A DNA stretch of 61,579 nt, filler included, from Bipalium vagum (taxonomy: Eukaryota): assembly GCA_037834085.1 (NCBI GenBank). It is 3 parts of 3 records of this genome, joined end to end, with 100 filler letters (N's around TTAATTAATTAA, not from the genome) between each part and the next. Parts side by side here need not be neighbours in the genome. Positions count along the whole stretch, not along the records: positions 1 to 22,090 come from JBBMKC010227101.1; 2 more parts are not named here. The stretch is one strand, 5' to 3'. Made by a program: the position numbers and the translations under genes. Each line of letters starts with the position of its first letter. Within the stretch, counting starts at the first letter, position 1. Below the pieces are notes generated by a model. The model saw only the letters and a program-made list of their open reading frames with translations, had not been told where the DNA came from and ran no database searches. Shown here piece by piece: positions 1 through 6,400 of this stretch.

Positions 1-207
1 CTTGATTGCAATCCTCTAGACTATTATGTGTGGAGCATGGTTGAGAAGGATGTTAATCAACATTACCACACATCTGTTGACTCTCTAAAAATTAAAATAC
101 AAGAAGTGATGACGAATCTCGATAAAAAGGTGCTGGTCAAGGCATTCCAGAGGTTCAGAGGCCGTATTGAGGCTGTATTCGCAGCTGAAGGAAGTTTTAT
201 TGGATGA
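1..207 (+). mobile_element. 3' end of maT (DD37D-like) Tc1/mariner transposase, truncated by window edge
   Basis: Frame 1 reads LDCNPLDYYVWSMVEKDVN...FQRFRGRIEAVFAAEGSFIG*, matching the SPDxNPLDYxVW motif and C-terminus of maT transposases. Confidence 0.8.
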
Positions 208-292
208 ACCTTTAAATATGTTTTGACCTATTTAATCAATGAAAGATTTACATTTATATAATAAAAAATAAAAAAGCGAATACTTATTACCA

Positions 293-650
293 AATGGGTT
301 CATTACTACATAACGGAAAGCAAATCCCAATCTAAGCAGTGAAAACATCGGAAAACCCCACCTCCAAGGTTAAATCTGTTAAATCTGCTGGATAGGTGTT
401 GGCATCTATATTTTTGGATGCAAAGGAAATCTTATGGAGAGTATTACGTAAAACTATTGGAAAAAATGGATACCATCATTGGAGAAAAATAAAATCATTT
501 TTCATCAAGATAATGCACGTCCACACCCGACATTAAGAACAATGGCAAAAATCAATGAATCAAATTACGAACTTCTTCATCATCCAACATATTTACCCGA
601 TTTGGCTGCCTCTGACTTTCACATGTTCCCAAAGTTGAACATGTTTCTTG
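293..650 (+). mobile_element. Degenerate mariner transposase fragment
   Basis: WVHYY..ESKSQSKQ, SAG*VLASIF, FHQDNARPH and HPTYLPDLAASDFHMFPKL motifs, with stops and frameshifts. Confidence 0.85.
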
Positions 651-1289
651 TGCACTAACTTTATCTTTTCGCCTAACACAATCCAATGTCTAAGACTTTA
701 CTGGTTCTGTTTAATTAAAAATGTTCAGTAGCACATGTTTTGAGGTGACAATGTCTCCTCTTTGTATGCATAATTAAATTGATAATTCAATTGATAATGA
801 TATTAGCTTGTATTATGGTGATCGTTGACACTTTAATTTGAATTTTTTAAAATAATTCTAACTAATATATAGATCTTTTTTAGTGTTATGAATACTATTT
901 TTAATAACATATATCTTTTGATTGAAATCCCGCTTTGTTTAAGAGAAATATTTAGAATTGTCATAACTTTAGTTAATGAGAATGTTAATAGTTTTCTTTG
1001 GATTTTACAATTATTGATTGTAACAAAGGTAACATTTTTTTAAAAAATTTAAGGTCATGAATATAATGGAGACATTTATTGTAAAACCTAAAACATTTTC
1101 TTCAATTAAATAGTTGATTTCTGTTTTTTCATATTGAAGAATATTGAATATATCTTGTATATTTGTATAAGATGAACCCACAATATATTAGGTTGTTCGG
1201 AAATAAATAAGCGTTTTTTATAAGGCAACTTTCGATTATTTTATTGTATATAAAATACGTATGAATGGCATTGTTAGTTGAAAATTAAT

Positions 1290-1361
1290 TGGAGATACCG
1301 GGATTCGAACCCGGGACCTTCACATGCACATGGAATGCTCTGACCCCTGAGCTATATCCCC
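1290..1361 (-). tRNA. tRNA-Ala-derived sequence in the 3' LTR (TGC at anticodon position; probably not a functional tRNA)
   Basis: GGGGATATAGCTCAGGGGTCAGAGC...GGTTCGAATCCCGGTATCTCCA; 7-bp acceptor stem with G3:U70 alanine identity pair, A box and B box intact, anticodon stem mispaired. Confidence 0.8.
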
Positions 1362-1386
1362 CGACTAACTTTCAATTTATCTCACA

Positions 1387-1398
1387 CCCCCCTCCTTT
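1387..1398 (-). other. Polypurine tract of the TRIM
   Basis: AAAGGAGGGGGG immediately precedes the TG of the 3' LTR on the minus strand. Confidence 0.88.
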
Positions 1399-1497
1399 AA
1401 AGCTCACATCCATACCCTTAACCACCCGAGACTCTTTACTTCTATTTCCATTCAATTCCTTTAGATTTTTACTTCCGAGACCTCGTCCGTGGTTGGT

Positions 1498-1515
1498 GTC
1501 CTGGTGTGGTCGCCA
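1498..1515 (-). other. Primer-binding site of the TRIM (likely tRNA-Arg)
   Basis: TGGCGACCACACCAGGAC directly after the CA of the 5' LTR; its complement GTCCTGGTGTGGTCG-CCA resembles metazoan tRNA-Arg 3' ends. Confidence 0.8.
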
Positions 1516-1533
1516 TGTTAGCTGAAAATTAAT

Positions 1534-1605
1534 CGGAGATACCGGGATTCGAAATGGGGACCTTCACGTGCGCATAGAATGCTCTGACCGCTGAGCTACA
1601 TCCTC
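1534..1605 (-). tRNA. tRNA-Ala-derived sequence in the 5' LTR (CGC at anticodon position; T-stem damaged)
   Basis: Second copy 244 bp from the first: GAGGATGTAGCTCAGCGGTCAGAGC...ATTTCGAATCCCGGTATCTCCG. Confidence 0.7.
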
Positions 1606-2729
1606 CGACTAACTTTCAATTTATCTCACAGGCATCATATGATATTCCAAATTGATGCTTAGATAATAAGGATTCATATTCTATATTAATTTTACTGCTT
1701 TAAATTAAACCATATTTTGGCACAGTTTAAAAATGTTAACAAACCAGCAAATTAGAGCAATATATCTCTACGAATTTAAACTTGGAAATTCTGCGGCAGA
1801 TGCAACCAGACATATAAACAGAACTTTCGGAGATGTTTATGTAGCAGAATCAACTACCCGTTAGTGATTTGCCAAATTCTGTATTGGAAAATTTGATCTC
1901 AGTGATGCAGAGGGTCGTGGGAGGAAAACTTCAGTGAACAATGATGATTTGAAGACAATTTTTGAATCAAACCAACAGAATACAGTAAGAAATTTATCCA
2001 AGCAACTATCAGTATTCTATTTCAACTGTTTCTCAACACCTTAAGGAAATTGGCAAGGTTAAAAAGTTAAATAAGTGGATACTGAAAAACAAATGAGATA
2101 TGATATTTCCTCAAAACTGATTCAAAGAAATAAAAATAATCCATTTTTGCACAGAATAATTACGTGTGATGATAAATGGATTCTTTACGATAACCGTAAA
2201 CGTCCATCTGAGTGAGTAGAGCGTGGTTCAGTTCCAAATTGTTCTAATTGAAAAAACGCTAATTTATTTCCGAACAACCTGATATTTCTAAAAATAAATA
2301 TATTTTATTCACAATCTAATAACCACATAGATTTATGACAATCAATACTTGGCCCTGATGAGAACTGATACTTTGTTAACAAATAAATAGCAATAAAATT
2401 TATTAACTTAATATAATAAATAAAAATTGAACAATTTTCAAAACAATATGTTATTTTATCTTTAAAATAACCATAATTAGTCCATTAAAACAACACGAGG
2501 CCAAACCAATTTTAATCCTTTTTTAAAATAATATTTAATTTTTATAAGTAATATATTAATTAAATTAAAAACTATAAATGCTACATATTTTCAGAGATAA
2601 ATGAAAATAAATTAGGTAATTTACAGGTACTAAAAGCCTTAAATATTACTACGTCGAAATGAAAGTATTTTTAGATTAATCACGGATTAAAGAATTAATA
2701 ATAATTAAATATTATTAACATAATACAAT

Positions 2730-3440: not shown

Positions 3441-6400
3441 TTGTGATGTGACAATCTTCGTTGATTAATGCAATGATTTCGTCATAATTGGTTTCTGTTG
3501 GTTGATCAATGCTGACTCATCTTTCAGTGGCCAATCATCACTGAATGATTAGAGTTAAATTCTTATATATGAATAAGATACGTTTTCTATTCTTTCATAC
3601 TACAACCAAAGACGAGGAAAATAATGTTAAAAAATAAGTTATCGATTAATCACTATTTTGCAGTCATAGTTAAACAATTATCTTACTTGAAATATATAAA
3701 TAAAATGCAGTAAAACAAGCTTTTATGGTAAAAATAATTATTATTAATTGGAGAGATTTTAAAGTTAATTTATGCAAATATTTTGCATAATAAATTTTAA
3801 TCAATACGGATCGAAAATTATGTTATACTAACGTAATATACAAATAGAATTTACGAAAAGTTAAAAGTAAAAAATATAAAGGTAAACAATTTCTCATAAG
3901 AAACCAACAAAAGTAAATACGAATGTTGATTGGCTAATAATAAATAAATAAATAAAATCAATATATACATTTTGAAAATTGACAAAATTTGCTGATCAAT
4001 TTAAATTAATGATGAAAATTATAGTATTAATTATAATATTTATTAATAATTTTGTGAATTAATAGTAATTTTTATAAAATTTTAATTAATAATATTTTAA
4101 ATGATTTTTTCTTTTTTCGTCATGAAATGATTTCTCCGTGAAACTCGATCGGCCAGTGGAGACATTTTGCAAATGATCATTTCAACTTTCCATCTTTTGC
4201 CCTTATAGCCTTTATTTATACATTTTTGAAAACGAGACGTTTAATTCACAATTGATTATTAATTAATTAGAAAATTAAGTAATTGAGGAAAATTTTCCAT
4301 TAAAATGTTCCATTTTTTATAGTAATTATTTNNNNNNNNNNNNNNNNNNNNNNNNNNNNNNNNNNNNNNNNNNNNNNNNNNNNNNNNNNNNNNNNNNNNN
4401 NNNNNNNNNNNNNNNNNNNNNNNNNNNNNNNNNNNNNNNNNNNNNNNNNNNNNNNNNNNNNNNNNNNNNNNNNNNNNNNNNNNNNTATTAGTAATACTAT
4501 TTATTATTATTTATATTATTACTATTTATATTTATTATTATTATTATTTTAACTATTCCTTAGTTTTATTAATTATATTCATCATTACCATTTTTAGTAC
4601 TTAATAATAATATTATTATTTATTATAATTACCAGTAGTACTATAATTATTATTTTTATTATTATTAAAAGATTGCAAATGTTATTTAAAGCTAAACATT
4701 ACAAAATACAATTCTTTTTGCTGACGAGTCTGTTTCGTATAGCTTGATAACAGACGATGTCGATGTATATTCCTGGAGAACATTTCTTAATCTGTTTACA
4801 ATCGTCGCTAGGATATTTTAAATATTCAATCATAATAATAATAATGATAATAATATTTTCTCCATCTAAATTATCTGCGTTTTTTATCCACAGTTTTCCT
4901 AATAATGATGGTACAAGAATATAGAGAACAGCTTTATCTGCATATTGATGACGACGTTTTCATTGTTCCCATACCCTTCTCTCTTCATTGACATTCGCAA
5001 AGCATCAATAAGAAATCGACAACTGTTCTGTTAAGCTTGTAACCCTGGCAATATGGGAGAATTTAATGATATTTATTGGTTAATATTTTGAACAACCACA
5101 AAATTAATTACCTTAGAATTTAATAATTAATATCCAAATGGTCTTTACTTTGAAACATAATATAATTTTGTTTTTTTTATTATTTTAAATAATAAATGAA
5201 ATTACTTATGAATCACCCTAATAGTATTATACATAGTATTTATTTATATATTATATTTACATACATACTTATTTTTAAAATATACTTATTATTATTATTA
5301 TTTTTAATATATTTATTTATATATTATTTATTATATATATAATTATTTTACTAATTAAAACAAGATTAATCGACTCTTATTATTCTTTACGGCAGTTCAG
5401 ATAAATGTTTTCACTATGTTTAACTATTTCTATTATGATCCTCTTGCTGTAGAAGTAAAAACAACGTTACGAATCCGTTGAAAAAGGCTCGACCTTCAAC
5501 ATAATAATCTATAAATTATTATCATGACCCTTTCCAGCGTTACACCATTCAAACTTTGCTACTAAGTGGAAAGATGCATCATTTTAAACTGTTCATCGCA
5601 TTATTTGTTTAAATATAACAAACACATAATATGATATCATTAAAAGTATAACACGGAGGTATTAAACAGGTGAAAAGATAATATAAAATCGAAGAATAAA
5701 AACAAACATTAATGTATTAAGGGTTTTCCTTTCCTGGTCGTATTATTGGTGTTGTTTTCTTTTTATTATGAAATACTTTACCATTATGTTATACGTGGGA
5801 TATTTAAAAAGGAAATAGGGGTAACCAAAACGAAGGAAGACACGTAGAGATGCATTATTAATATATTTTTCATTAAATAAAACAAGAGAAATAATATATT
5901 TTCCATGTTAATACTATTATCATAATGGTTTTTAATATCAAGCCCTGAACACCTCATGAGGATATTAGTACAGAAATAATTCCATGTTGGGGTGGATTAT
6001 TAAGGTGGGTTATATTTATTCAAGCTAACTAAACCCTTTTTTTTGCTTTCTTACCGGGTTTTATGTTAAATGTTACTACTTACAGTGTTTAGTGAGTAAG
6101 ACATAAAGCTCGGTATCTCATAGTTGTATTAAGGTGGACTATCGAAAGAAACAACCAAGAGCTCAGGAAATGCAATATCGTCTTGATGGTATTCGTGTTA
6201 TTATTTTGTTTTTCTTTTAACTTTATTCCCCAATCTAATTTCACAAAGATATTGCCAAGTACTCGACCGTCTCCAATTGTCACTTTGGACTGTGATAAGG
6301 CTTACAGGTCACCAGCACTCCACAAATAGTGATTATAACCGGATTAGGATTAATTATGTTGTTACGTTTATAAGCCTTGTCCTGAAAAATTCTTATACCA

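Follow-up and report, generated by a model that had tools for sequence, protein, structure and literature searches.

The window analysed here is a stretch of 61,579 nucleotides, filler included, from the Bipalium vagum assembly GCA_037834085.1. Near its start, at positions 1272–1630 on the minus strand, lies an element of 359 bp bounded by two long terminal repeats (LTRs). We read it as an old copy of a non-autonomous LTR retrotransposon, a terminal-repeat retrotransposon in miniature (TRIM) of the Helenus/TRIMp3 kind, and put the probability of this reading at about 0.85. All coordinates are window positions and the sense of the TRIM is the minus strand. Together with the short duplication on either side the element occupies 369 nt (1267–1635). 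Read along the minus strand from 1635 to 1267, the order is ATGCC, 5′ LTR, primer-binding site (PBS), the remaining 111 nt of the interior, polypurine tract (PPT), 3′ LTR and, once more, ATGCC.

A repeat search of the window returned the LTRs as a pair of 115-nt repeats, 244 nt apart and 90.4% identical. The 5′ LTR (1516–1630, minus strand) reads TGTGAG...CAGCTAACA and the 3′ LTR (1272–1386, minus strand) TGTGAG...CAACTAACA. In a public run, X1, seemingly of the same organism, unmatched contig ends pile up at the two outer edges of the element, 116 contigs ending at exactly 1272 and 118 at exactly 1630. The PBS (1498–1515, minus strand; TGGCGACCACACCAGGAC) follows the 5′ LTR with zero spacer; its 18 nt are complementary to the 3′ end of tRNA-Arg(ACG) carrying CCA. 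The PPT (1387–1398, minus strand; AAAGGAGGGGGG) abuts the 3′ LTR. At 129 bp the interior (1387–1515, minus strand) is too short to code. Its composition is A 36, G 33, C 14 and T 17%, that is 69% purine, against a genome of 26% G+C, and its sense strand lacks TTTT. On the plus strand GGCAT stands at 1267–1271, to the left of the element, and again at 1631–1635, to its right. Direct TG..CA terminal repeats thus enclose a short interior, with the PBS adjoining the 5′ LTR and the PPT the 3′ LTR, as is found in TRIMs. An earlier note on this DNA had described a complete element of this kind. When the sequence was re-read and the repeat search made, its coordinates proved correct throughout, including those of the LTRs, PBS, PPT and GGCAT duplication, and the completeness of the TRIM can be read directly from the 115-bp LTRs around the 129-bp interior.

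What did the element insert into? It sits inside a Mos1-type mariner transposon (plus strand, 1172–1266 and 1636–~2900), recognized by its Pfam HTH_48 domain and its repeated flanks. The mariner repeat begins near 1172, before the TRIM. Beyond the TRIM (1636–2215, plus strand) lie the HTH_48 domain of the transposase, at 1733–1861 (Pfam, E 3e-10), and a mariner-like piece of open reading frame (ORF) at 2075–2215. In contigs of X1 (four contigs) and of X10 and X9, which are runs of two other organisms, 1266 is joined directly to 1631. This joint skips 364 nt (359 + 5), the five letters fitting either side. The TRIM-free joints represent sister copies of the mariner in which GGCAT stands only once; the existence of such an empty site was a test set beforehand, and it was passed. 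The same mariner without the TRIM thus occurs in the runs of the two other organisms. A second mariner remnant, C-terminal, lies at 28–658 (plus strand).

The family and the tRNA-like core of its LTR

With the whole 369 nt as query, the 440-Mb assembly gave 3,162 first-look candidates; identity among the 40 that were scored is 85–93%, and most of the 30 loci fetched align from the first through the last LTR base. Copy-level statistics were taken from 20 full-length copies, hence from 40 LTRs. The LTR begins with TGTGAG in 33 of the 40 and ends with CTAACA in 38. The PPT reads AAAGGAGGGGGA in 12 of the 20 copies, its conserved form being AAAGGAGGGGG(G/A). Flanking duplications of 5 bp are perfect in 14 copies, agree at four of five letters in 4 and are absent from 2. 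Target sites differ between copies, the single recurring pentamer being ATCTG, on two contigs. The copies are dispersed and their duplications have a fixed length, again as in TRIMs. Other copies with the same ends and varying duplications, on which the earlier note had made its reading depend, are therefore present, and the 5-bp duplication that it had read at this locus is supported by the 14 perfect copies and by the empty site. The LTRs of one element are 89.6–99.1% identical to one another across the 20 copies. Since identity reaches 99.1%, some insertions are fairly young; the window copy, at 90.4%, is among the oldest.

For a census we counted 31-mer patterns genome-wide, allowing up to 3 mismatches; the reversed-pattern controls all gave 0, and copy numbers are taken from these counts, not from contig depth. 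The LTR pattern has 2,162 matches, the LTR/PBS junction 443 and the PPT/LTR junction 385, hence about 400–440 interiors. At about five LTRs per interior there are roughly 1,300 LTRs beyond the two that each interior accounts for. In X1, moreover, contig joints link equivalent LTR positions about 244 nt apart, which is what solo LTRs would give, although the fetched loci include no solo LTR. We conclude from the pattern counts and these joints that solo LTRs, the products of LTR–LTR recombination, outnumber complete copies. We further conclude that hundreds to thousands of copies have been made of the element, and that the integrase behind its insertion is of the LTR-retrotransposon type and generates duplications of 5 bp. 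X6, a run of a different organism, contains diverged pieces of the TRIM whose ends are the same. In one subfamily the 3′ half of the interior differs: contigs of X1 and X6 that match 1387–1490 have loose ends at 1490, and the divergent half is visible in copies L017, L018 and L026.

Two tRNA-like sequences in direct orientation, 244 nt apart, might also be taken for something that never moved as an LTR element, either tandem tRNA-Ala pseudogenes left by a local duplication or a dimeric tRNA-derived short interspersed element (SINE). Against this stand hundreds of copies with identical TG..CA ends, PBS and PPT and with differing 5-bp duplications, the precise empty site, and the lack of an A-rich or LINE-like tail (LINE, long interspersed element). 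The duplications of the 20 full copies together with the empty site rule out both versions, to which we give practically no credence.

How is the LTR itself built? A U3-like leader of 24–25 nt is followed by a tRNA-Ala unit (body, 5-nt trailer and TTTT) and by a 9-nt end, CA(A/G)CTAACA. In the 3′ LTR the tRNA-Ala(UGC)-derived module occupies 1290–1361 (minus strand). ARAGORN calls a tRNA over exactly these positions, with the anticodon undetermined, and the Rfam tRNA model scores 51.9 bits there against a threshold of 29. An A box (1354–1344) and a B box (1311–1301), both on the minus strand, can be read in the sequence, as can the pairing of G3 with a U at canonical position 70. A TTTT run resembling a terminator of RNA polymerase III (Pol III) lies 5 nt past the module, at 1281–1284 (minus strand). 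The boxes and the G3:U70 pair had been claimed for this copy before and are confirmed in it. The corresponding module of the 5′ LTR (1605–1534, minus strand) is so decayed, its T arm being broken, that no tRNA is called there; a TTTT run follows it at 1528–1525 (minus strand). Across the family the A box is intact in 33 of the 40 LTRs, the B box in 20, and 39 have TTTT after the module.

The host's own tRNA-Ala(UGC) genes, recovered by pattern search (contigs C1178 and C268700), are identical to the module of a typical copy at 60 of 72 positions, with two 1-nt indels (counted by eye). This bears out the tRNA-Ala origin that the earlier note had assigned to the core of the LTR. The leading 19 nt of the module are identical to the host gene, and both have the gene-specific stretch GCATGTGAA(A)GGTCCCGGGTTCGA. 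Scrambling is confined to the anticodon arm and, because that arm is destroyed, the module cannot work as an alanine tRNA. The resemblance extends beyond the body: host tRNA-Ala genes are followed by TAATTTT, AATTTT or ATTTTT, the module by ATTAATTTT, and CCA is absent after the module. With body, trailer and terminator all present, the LTR carries a whole tRNA-Ala transcription unit. The closeness to host tRNA-Ala(UGC), together with the gene-like trailer and the four T's, favours capture of a tRNA gene or of its primary transcript over descent from a SINE. Minimum-free-energy folding, on the other hand, weighs against the tRNA assignment: neither module gave a cloverleaf and stability was not significant (z −0.45 and +1.37). 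Support for the tRNA call thus comes from the covariance model and from the match to the host genes.

Primer, candidate helper and transcription

Host genes for tRNA-Arg(ACG) (for example on C262788) read GGCCGCG...TTCGAGTCCTGGCGTGGTCG, then TATTTTTT. With CCA added to the gene end (...GTCCTGGCGTGGTCG), the tRNA is complementary to the PBS at 17 of 18 positions, and the complementarity stops at exactly nucleotide 18. The sole mismatch is at PBS position 11, where an A stands in place of G. Some TRIM copies, a minority (C14470, C25063, C26028, C28546), do have the G and fit at 18 of 18. In addition, in CCA-tailed retro-copies of tRNA-Arg next to LTR ends (L034, L038, L043) the discordant position is a T, in agreement with the common PBS, and the best preserved of these, L034, matches it at 18 of 18. 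The proposal of an Arg-type primer thus holds for the assembled genes at 17 of 18 positions and perfectly for L034 and for some TRIM copies. We infer a second tRNA-Arg(ACG) isodecoder, with U66; the A/G alternation at PBS position 11 may then reflect re-copying of the PBS from two primer isodecoders.

At L034 (the same as L050), L036, L038 and L043 (the same as L048), the place of an 18-nt PBS behind the LTR end (...CTAACA or ...TTAACA) is taken by 35–70 nt of reverse-complemented tRNA-Arg(ACG), CCA included. At L038:109–181 the copy behind the LTR end is a nearly whole tRNA. These long tracts look like reverse transcription that ran into the primer tRNA and became fixed in integrated copies.

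Which element might supply the enzymes? A search with the 3′ end of tRNA-Arg, and with nothing else, led to family X, which has at least 110 LTR/PBS junctions. Its LTR, of about 220–257 bp, starts TGTGAGTATTTAAAC and ends ...GATATCGCAGCTAACA; the first 6 nt (TGTGAG) and the last 9 nt (...CAGCTAACA) of the 5′ LTR in the window are common to most family-X copies. Deeper in the LTR the similarity between TRIM and family X is not significant; at the 3′ end, 19 of 2,000 shuffles score as well. Behind the LTR some copies have TGGCGACCACACCAG... and most a decayed TGACGACCAACACCAG. The PPT is of the form ...GGGGGGA, one copy having ...AAAAGGGGGGA directly before an LTR, compared with GGAGGGGGA in the TRIM. 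The coding part begins with a gag-like frame with CCHC zinc knuckles, continues with an aspartic protease (LLDTGD) and reaches the start of a reverse transcriptase. A HMMER search with a 259-aa protease piece found long relatives at 31–47% identity over the matched stretch, and in the nearest long homologues the Pfam order is protease, RVT_1, RT_RNaseH, Integrase_H2C2 and rve, the Ty3/Gypsy architecture. A Copia order is ruled out for family X, since reverse transcriptase directly follows protease, and the family-X protease gave no Peptidase_A17 (BEL) signal. By these signatures family X is Gypsy-like, with the right LTR ends, PBS homology and PPT.

Several observations concern family X in its own right. 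In L015 (C189039, 1403–2872) a TRIM copy (1449–1816, minus strand) is inserted in a family-X LTR, 46 bp from the LTR start at 1403, and the family-X protease follows at 2375–2872; the TRIM here inserted into its putative helper. At the family-X boundary (for example in L052 and L053) the last LTR bases form an ATG (..CA|TG..) that opens the gag-like frame (MTTNTREFLAESL...), so the decayed PBS would be read as the first gag codons. Family-X copies with an intact PBS are out of frame at the LTR/PBS boundary. At L075:5543–6985 exons of a MAPK15/ERK7-like protein kinase adjoin a truncated family-X copy. At L074:2459–2899 and 5640–6239 two similar ORFs, separated by about 3.2 kb, both have a family-X junction close by; this is a duplicated host segment together with its insertion. 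An apparent spacing of 4.9 kb in family X proved to be a duplicated host region. The fetched family-X copies showed no second LTR and no long ORFs, and a motif scan of the fetched loci found no reverse transcriptase.

Is family X, then, the helper? The search for an autonomous partner which the earlier note had called for yielded a candidate that shares the LTR ends and a G-rich PPT with the TRIM; the PBS of this candidate is homologous yet mostly decayed, and its copies are broken. Four points weigh against family X. Every copy that was read is broken; most have the decayed PBS (TGACGACCAACACCAG); the interior of the TRIM has no match in family X; and LTR similarity beyond the 6 + 9 nt is not significant, 205 of 2,000 shuffles being as good at the 5′ end. 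The helper may instead be some other autonomous LTR retrotransposon, such as a younger Gypsy with intact frames, family Y or a BEL/Pao element. The state of family X favours such a choice, as do the open frames of 959–1,138 aa in related families, the LTRs of some TRIM copies, young at 99% identity, and the fact that other LTR ends, for example ATAGCTGCTAACA, also precede a perfect TGGCGACC. Family Y, moreover, has a longer tRNA-Arg match. However, family X was found by its tRNA-Arg sequence only, and its LTRs then proved to have the TGTGAG and CAGCTAACA of the TRIM, whereas the LTR of family Y ends in ...AAAACT, unlike that of the TRIM; the missing Peptidase_A17 signal speaks against BEL. We consider a different helper a real but lesser prospect, and think family X, somewhat better than evenly, to be the helper of the TRIM or the helper's close kin. 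Family Y was seen at L035, L037 and at least five further contigs, where its LTR end is followed by 22 nt complementary to the tRNA-Arg 3′ end (TGGCGACCACACCAGGACTCGA) and then by open gag-like sequence.

How might the TRIM be transcribed and replicated? In the scheme that we propose, Pol III would make the genomic RNA from the A/B-box promoter inside the 5′ LTR. The transcript would have to pass the TTTT of the 5′ LTR and terminate at that of the 3′ LTR; R would correspond to the tRNA-like unit, U5 to the last 9 nt and U3 to the first 24–25 nt of the LTR. Reverse transcriptase and integrase would be supplied in trans by a Ty3/Gypsy-like family of the same genome. Several features are consistent with Pol III: the LTR has kept a whole tRNA unit, with the A box intact in 33 and the B box in 20 of the 40 LTRs; TTTT comes after the module in 39 of them; an element of 359 bp is within Pol III reach; and, on the sense strand, TTTT occurs in none of the 20 interiors while AAAA occurs in 19. 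The LTR of Cassandra is laid out likewise, with both promoter and terminator (PMC7215508). The scheme has its difficulties too. Many Pol III transcripts should terminate at the TTTT right after the tRNA-like unit of the 5′ LTR, short of the PBS, and the T-poor interior may merely reflect purine-richness, about 0.1 TTTT being expected at 17% T. As between Pol III on the one hand and RNA polymerase II (Pol II) or read-through transcription on the other, we would give about even odds.

The same TRIM could have its replicative RNA made by Pol II, starting at an LTR promoter or reading through from neighbouring genes, the tRNA-like unit being a passenger or otherwise used (as a short Pol III RNA, in chromatin marking or as a packaging structure). 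A TTTT right after the module in both LTRs, which should end Pol III transcripts short of the PBS, fits this well; so do the TATA-like ATAAAT at LTR positions 8–13, a B box that is intact in just half of the LTRs (20 of 40), and the fact that most TRIMs are Pol II elements (PMC10886601). Yet the U3-like part measures just 24–25 nt, the LTR shows no evident poly(A) signal, and T runs are avoided in the interior on the sense strand only. The module, moreover, retains the whole Pol III unit down to its gene-like trailer, and for Cassandra, an analogous element, transcription reportedly starts at the Pol III promoter that it carries (PMC10886601). Transcription by Pol II in this form strikes us as rather doubtful.

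A more detailed version of our own proposal can be offered only tentatively. R would be a complete pre-tRNA-Ala unit with its own TTTT, captured from a host gene or pre-tRNA; the A/G polymorphism of the PBS would stem from two isodecoders; and the element would be the first flatworm representative of the Helenus type and the first animal one with a 5-bp integrase. If this were true, a terminator ignored in the 5′ LTR and obeyed in the 3′ LTR would pose for Pol III the kind of problem that retroviruses have with their poly(A) signal.

Relation to known elements

Helenus denotes TRIMs with tRNA-derived sequence in their LTRs (Kojima 2024, PMC10886601). The name TRIMp3 has been proposed for Helenus together with Cassandra and Ajax (PMC10886601). 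Helenus is regarded as having several origins, so that its definition does not demand homology. The hosts listed are fungi, one lycophyte and six animal phyla, Platyhelminthes not being among them (PMC10886601), and our literature search found no paper in which Helenus and Platyhelminthes are mentioned together. According to the available part of Table S1 of that paper, animal Helenus families with a determined length have 4-bp duplications and are linked to Gypsy, while fungal and plant families have 5-bp duplications and the fungal ones are linked to Copia (PMC10886601). What the earlier note says of Helenus, as tRNA-containing TRIMs with 4-bp duplications in animals, agrees with this source.

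The element of the window is like Helenus in many respects. It is short (359 bp, within a range of 311–1,263 bp for Helenus) and non-coding. Its LTR contains tRNA-derived sequence with A and B boxes, a core that is unusable as a tRNA. A PBS fitting a host tRNA 3′ end and a PPT are present, and solo LTRs occur. Both tRNA-Arg primers and tRNA-Ala cores are known among described families. The candidate helper, family X, would belong to the Gypsy superfamily, as do the helpers of animal Helenus. It is unlike Helenus in others. Its duplication is 5 bp, as against the 4 bp given for animals in the available part of Table S1. Its host, to judge by the mitochondrial code, the 26% G+C and the abundance of mariners, is apparently a flatworm, a phylum outside the published list. 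The tRNA most similar to its core is the tRNA-Ala(UGC) of the host, and the core has a gene-like trailer and four T's, whereas a SINE has been proposed as the tRNA source for Helenus generally (PMC10886601). Its LTR termini, finally, are common to the candidate helper, whereas LTR-1_PTrit and Copia-9_PGr are reported to have no LTR similarity, and long shared LTR stretches are deemed unlikely (PMC10886601).

An exact-word look-up in the published Helenus sequences found no 8–21-nt word of the PBS, of the LTR start or of the tRNA 3′ part. A generic 13-mer of the D arm does occur in one rust Helenus family, by the same exact-word look-up only. The missing words and the unlisted host phylum make the independent lineage proposed in the earlier note a reasonable view and, because Helenus has arisen many times, it would be an independent lineage within a known kind, not a new kind. 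By its sequence features, the element fits the structural definition of Helenus as such a lineage.

How does it compare with the other small-RNA-bearing elements? Cassandra is a TRIM of plants (Kalendar et al. 2008; PMC7215508) whose LTRs carry 5S RNA and contain a Pol III promoter and terminator (PMC7215508). The two are alike in having a complete small-RNA Pol III unit in the LTR, a high copy number and LTRs that far exceed interiors in number. Cassandra differs in that its module is 5S and not tRNA, its hosts are plants, its helper is unknown and it forms long tandem arrays, which are hinted at here only by a few contig joints that go back. Ajax is a nemertean TRIMp3 with a 5S-derived promoter fragment, a tRNA-Leu primer and 5-bp duplications (PMC10886601). 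It resembles our element as an animal TRIMp3 with a 5-bp duplication, and differs in the 5S-derived fragment and the tRNA-Leu primer. In the window there is no 5S, Rfam reporting tRNA only, which sets the element apart from both Cassandra and Ajax.

Among flatworms, ta-TRIM is known from taeniid tapeworms (Koziol et al. 2015, PMC4558846). By its description, ta-TRIM is likewise a flatworm TRIM but an ordinary one, for which a small-RNA module is unreported. Sm-alpha of Schistosoma is a SINE2 family derived from tRNA-Gln (PMC2770079). Such tRNA-derived SINEs have in common with the TRIM an internal tRNA-derived Pol III promoter, thousands of copies and inflated tRNA pseudogene counts. Unlike the TRIM, they are without LTRs, PBS and PPT, are copied by LINE machinery and have duplications of variable length.

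TRIMs that carry a tRNA sequence seem here to have arisen independently, in a phylum without described ones, which supports the repeated origin of the design. The published rule of 4-bp duplications in animal Helenus, as far as the available part of Table S1 gives it, is broken. There is a concrete candidate for the helper, with the LTR termini of the TRIM, a homologue of its PBS and a PPT resembling its own, something that is lacking for most TRIMp3 families. About 2,000 LTRs with tRNA-Ala-like sequence should inflate tRNA and pseudogene predictions in this genome, and scatter potential Pol III promoters through it. With a precise empty site and many solo LTRs, the family should also be usable as a source of insertion markers.

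Mitochondrial sequence on the fetched loci

COX1-like fragments with mixed stop codons lie on nuclear-looking contigs, as nuclear copies of mitochondrial DNA, at L031–L033 and 20 more places. L031 also has an intact mitochondrial COX1 in which TGA is read as Trp, AGA as Ser and AAA as Asn, AAA standing at four invariant asparagine positions (GGFGNW, PRxNNLSFW, xFNTSFFDP). This codon use fits genetic code 9, 14 or 21, which we take to be those of flatworms and echinoderms.

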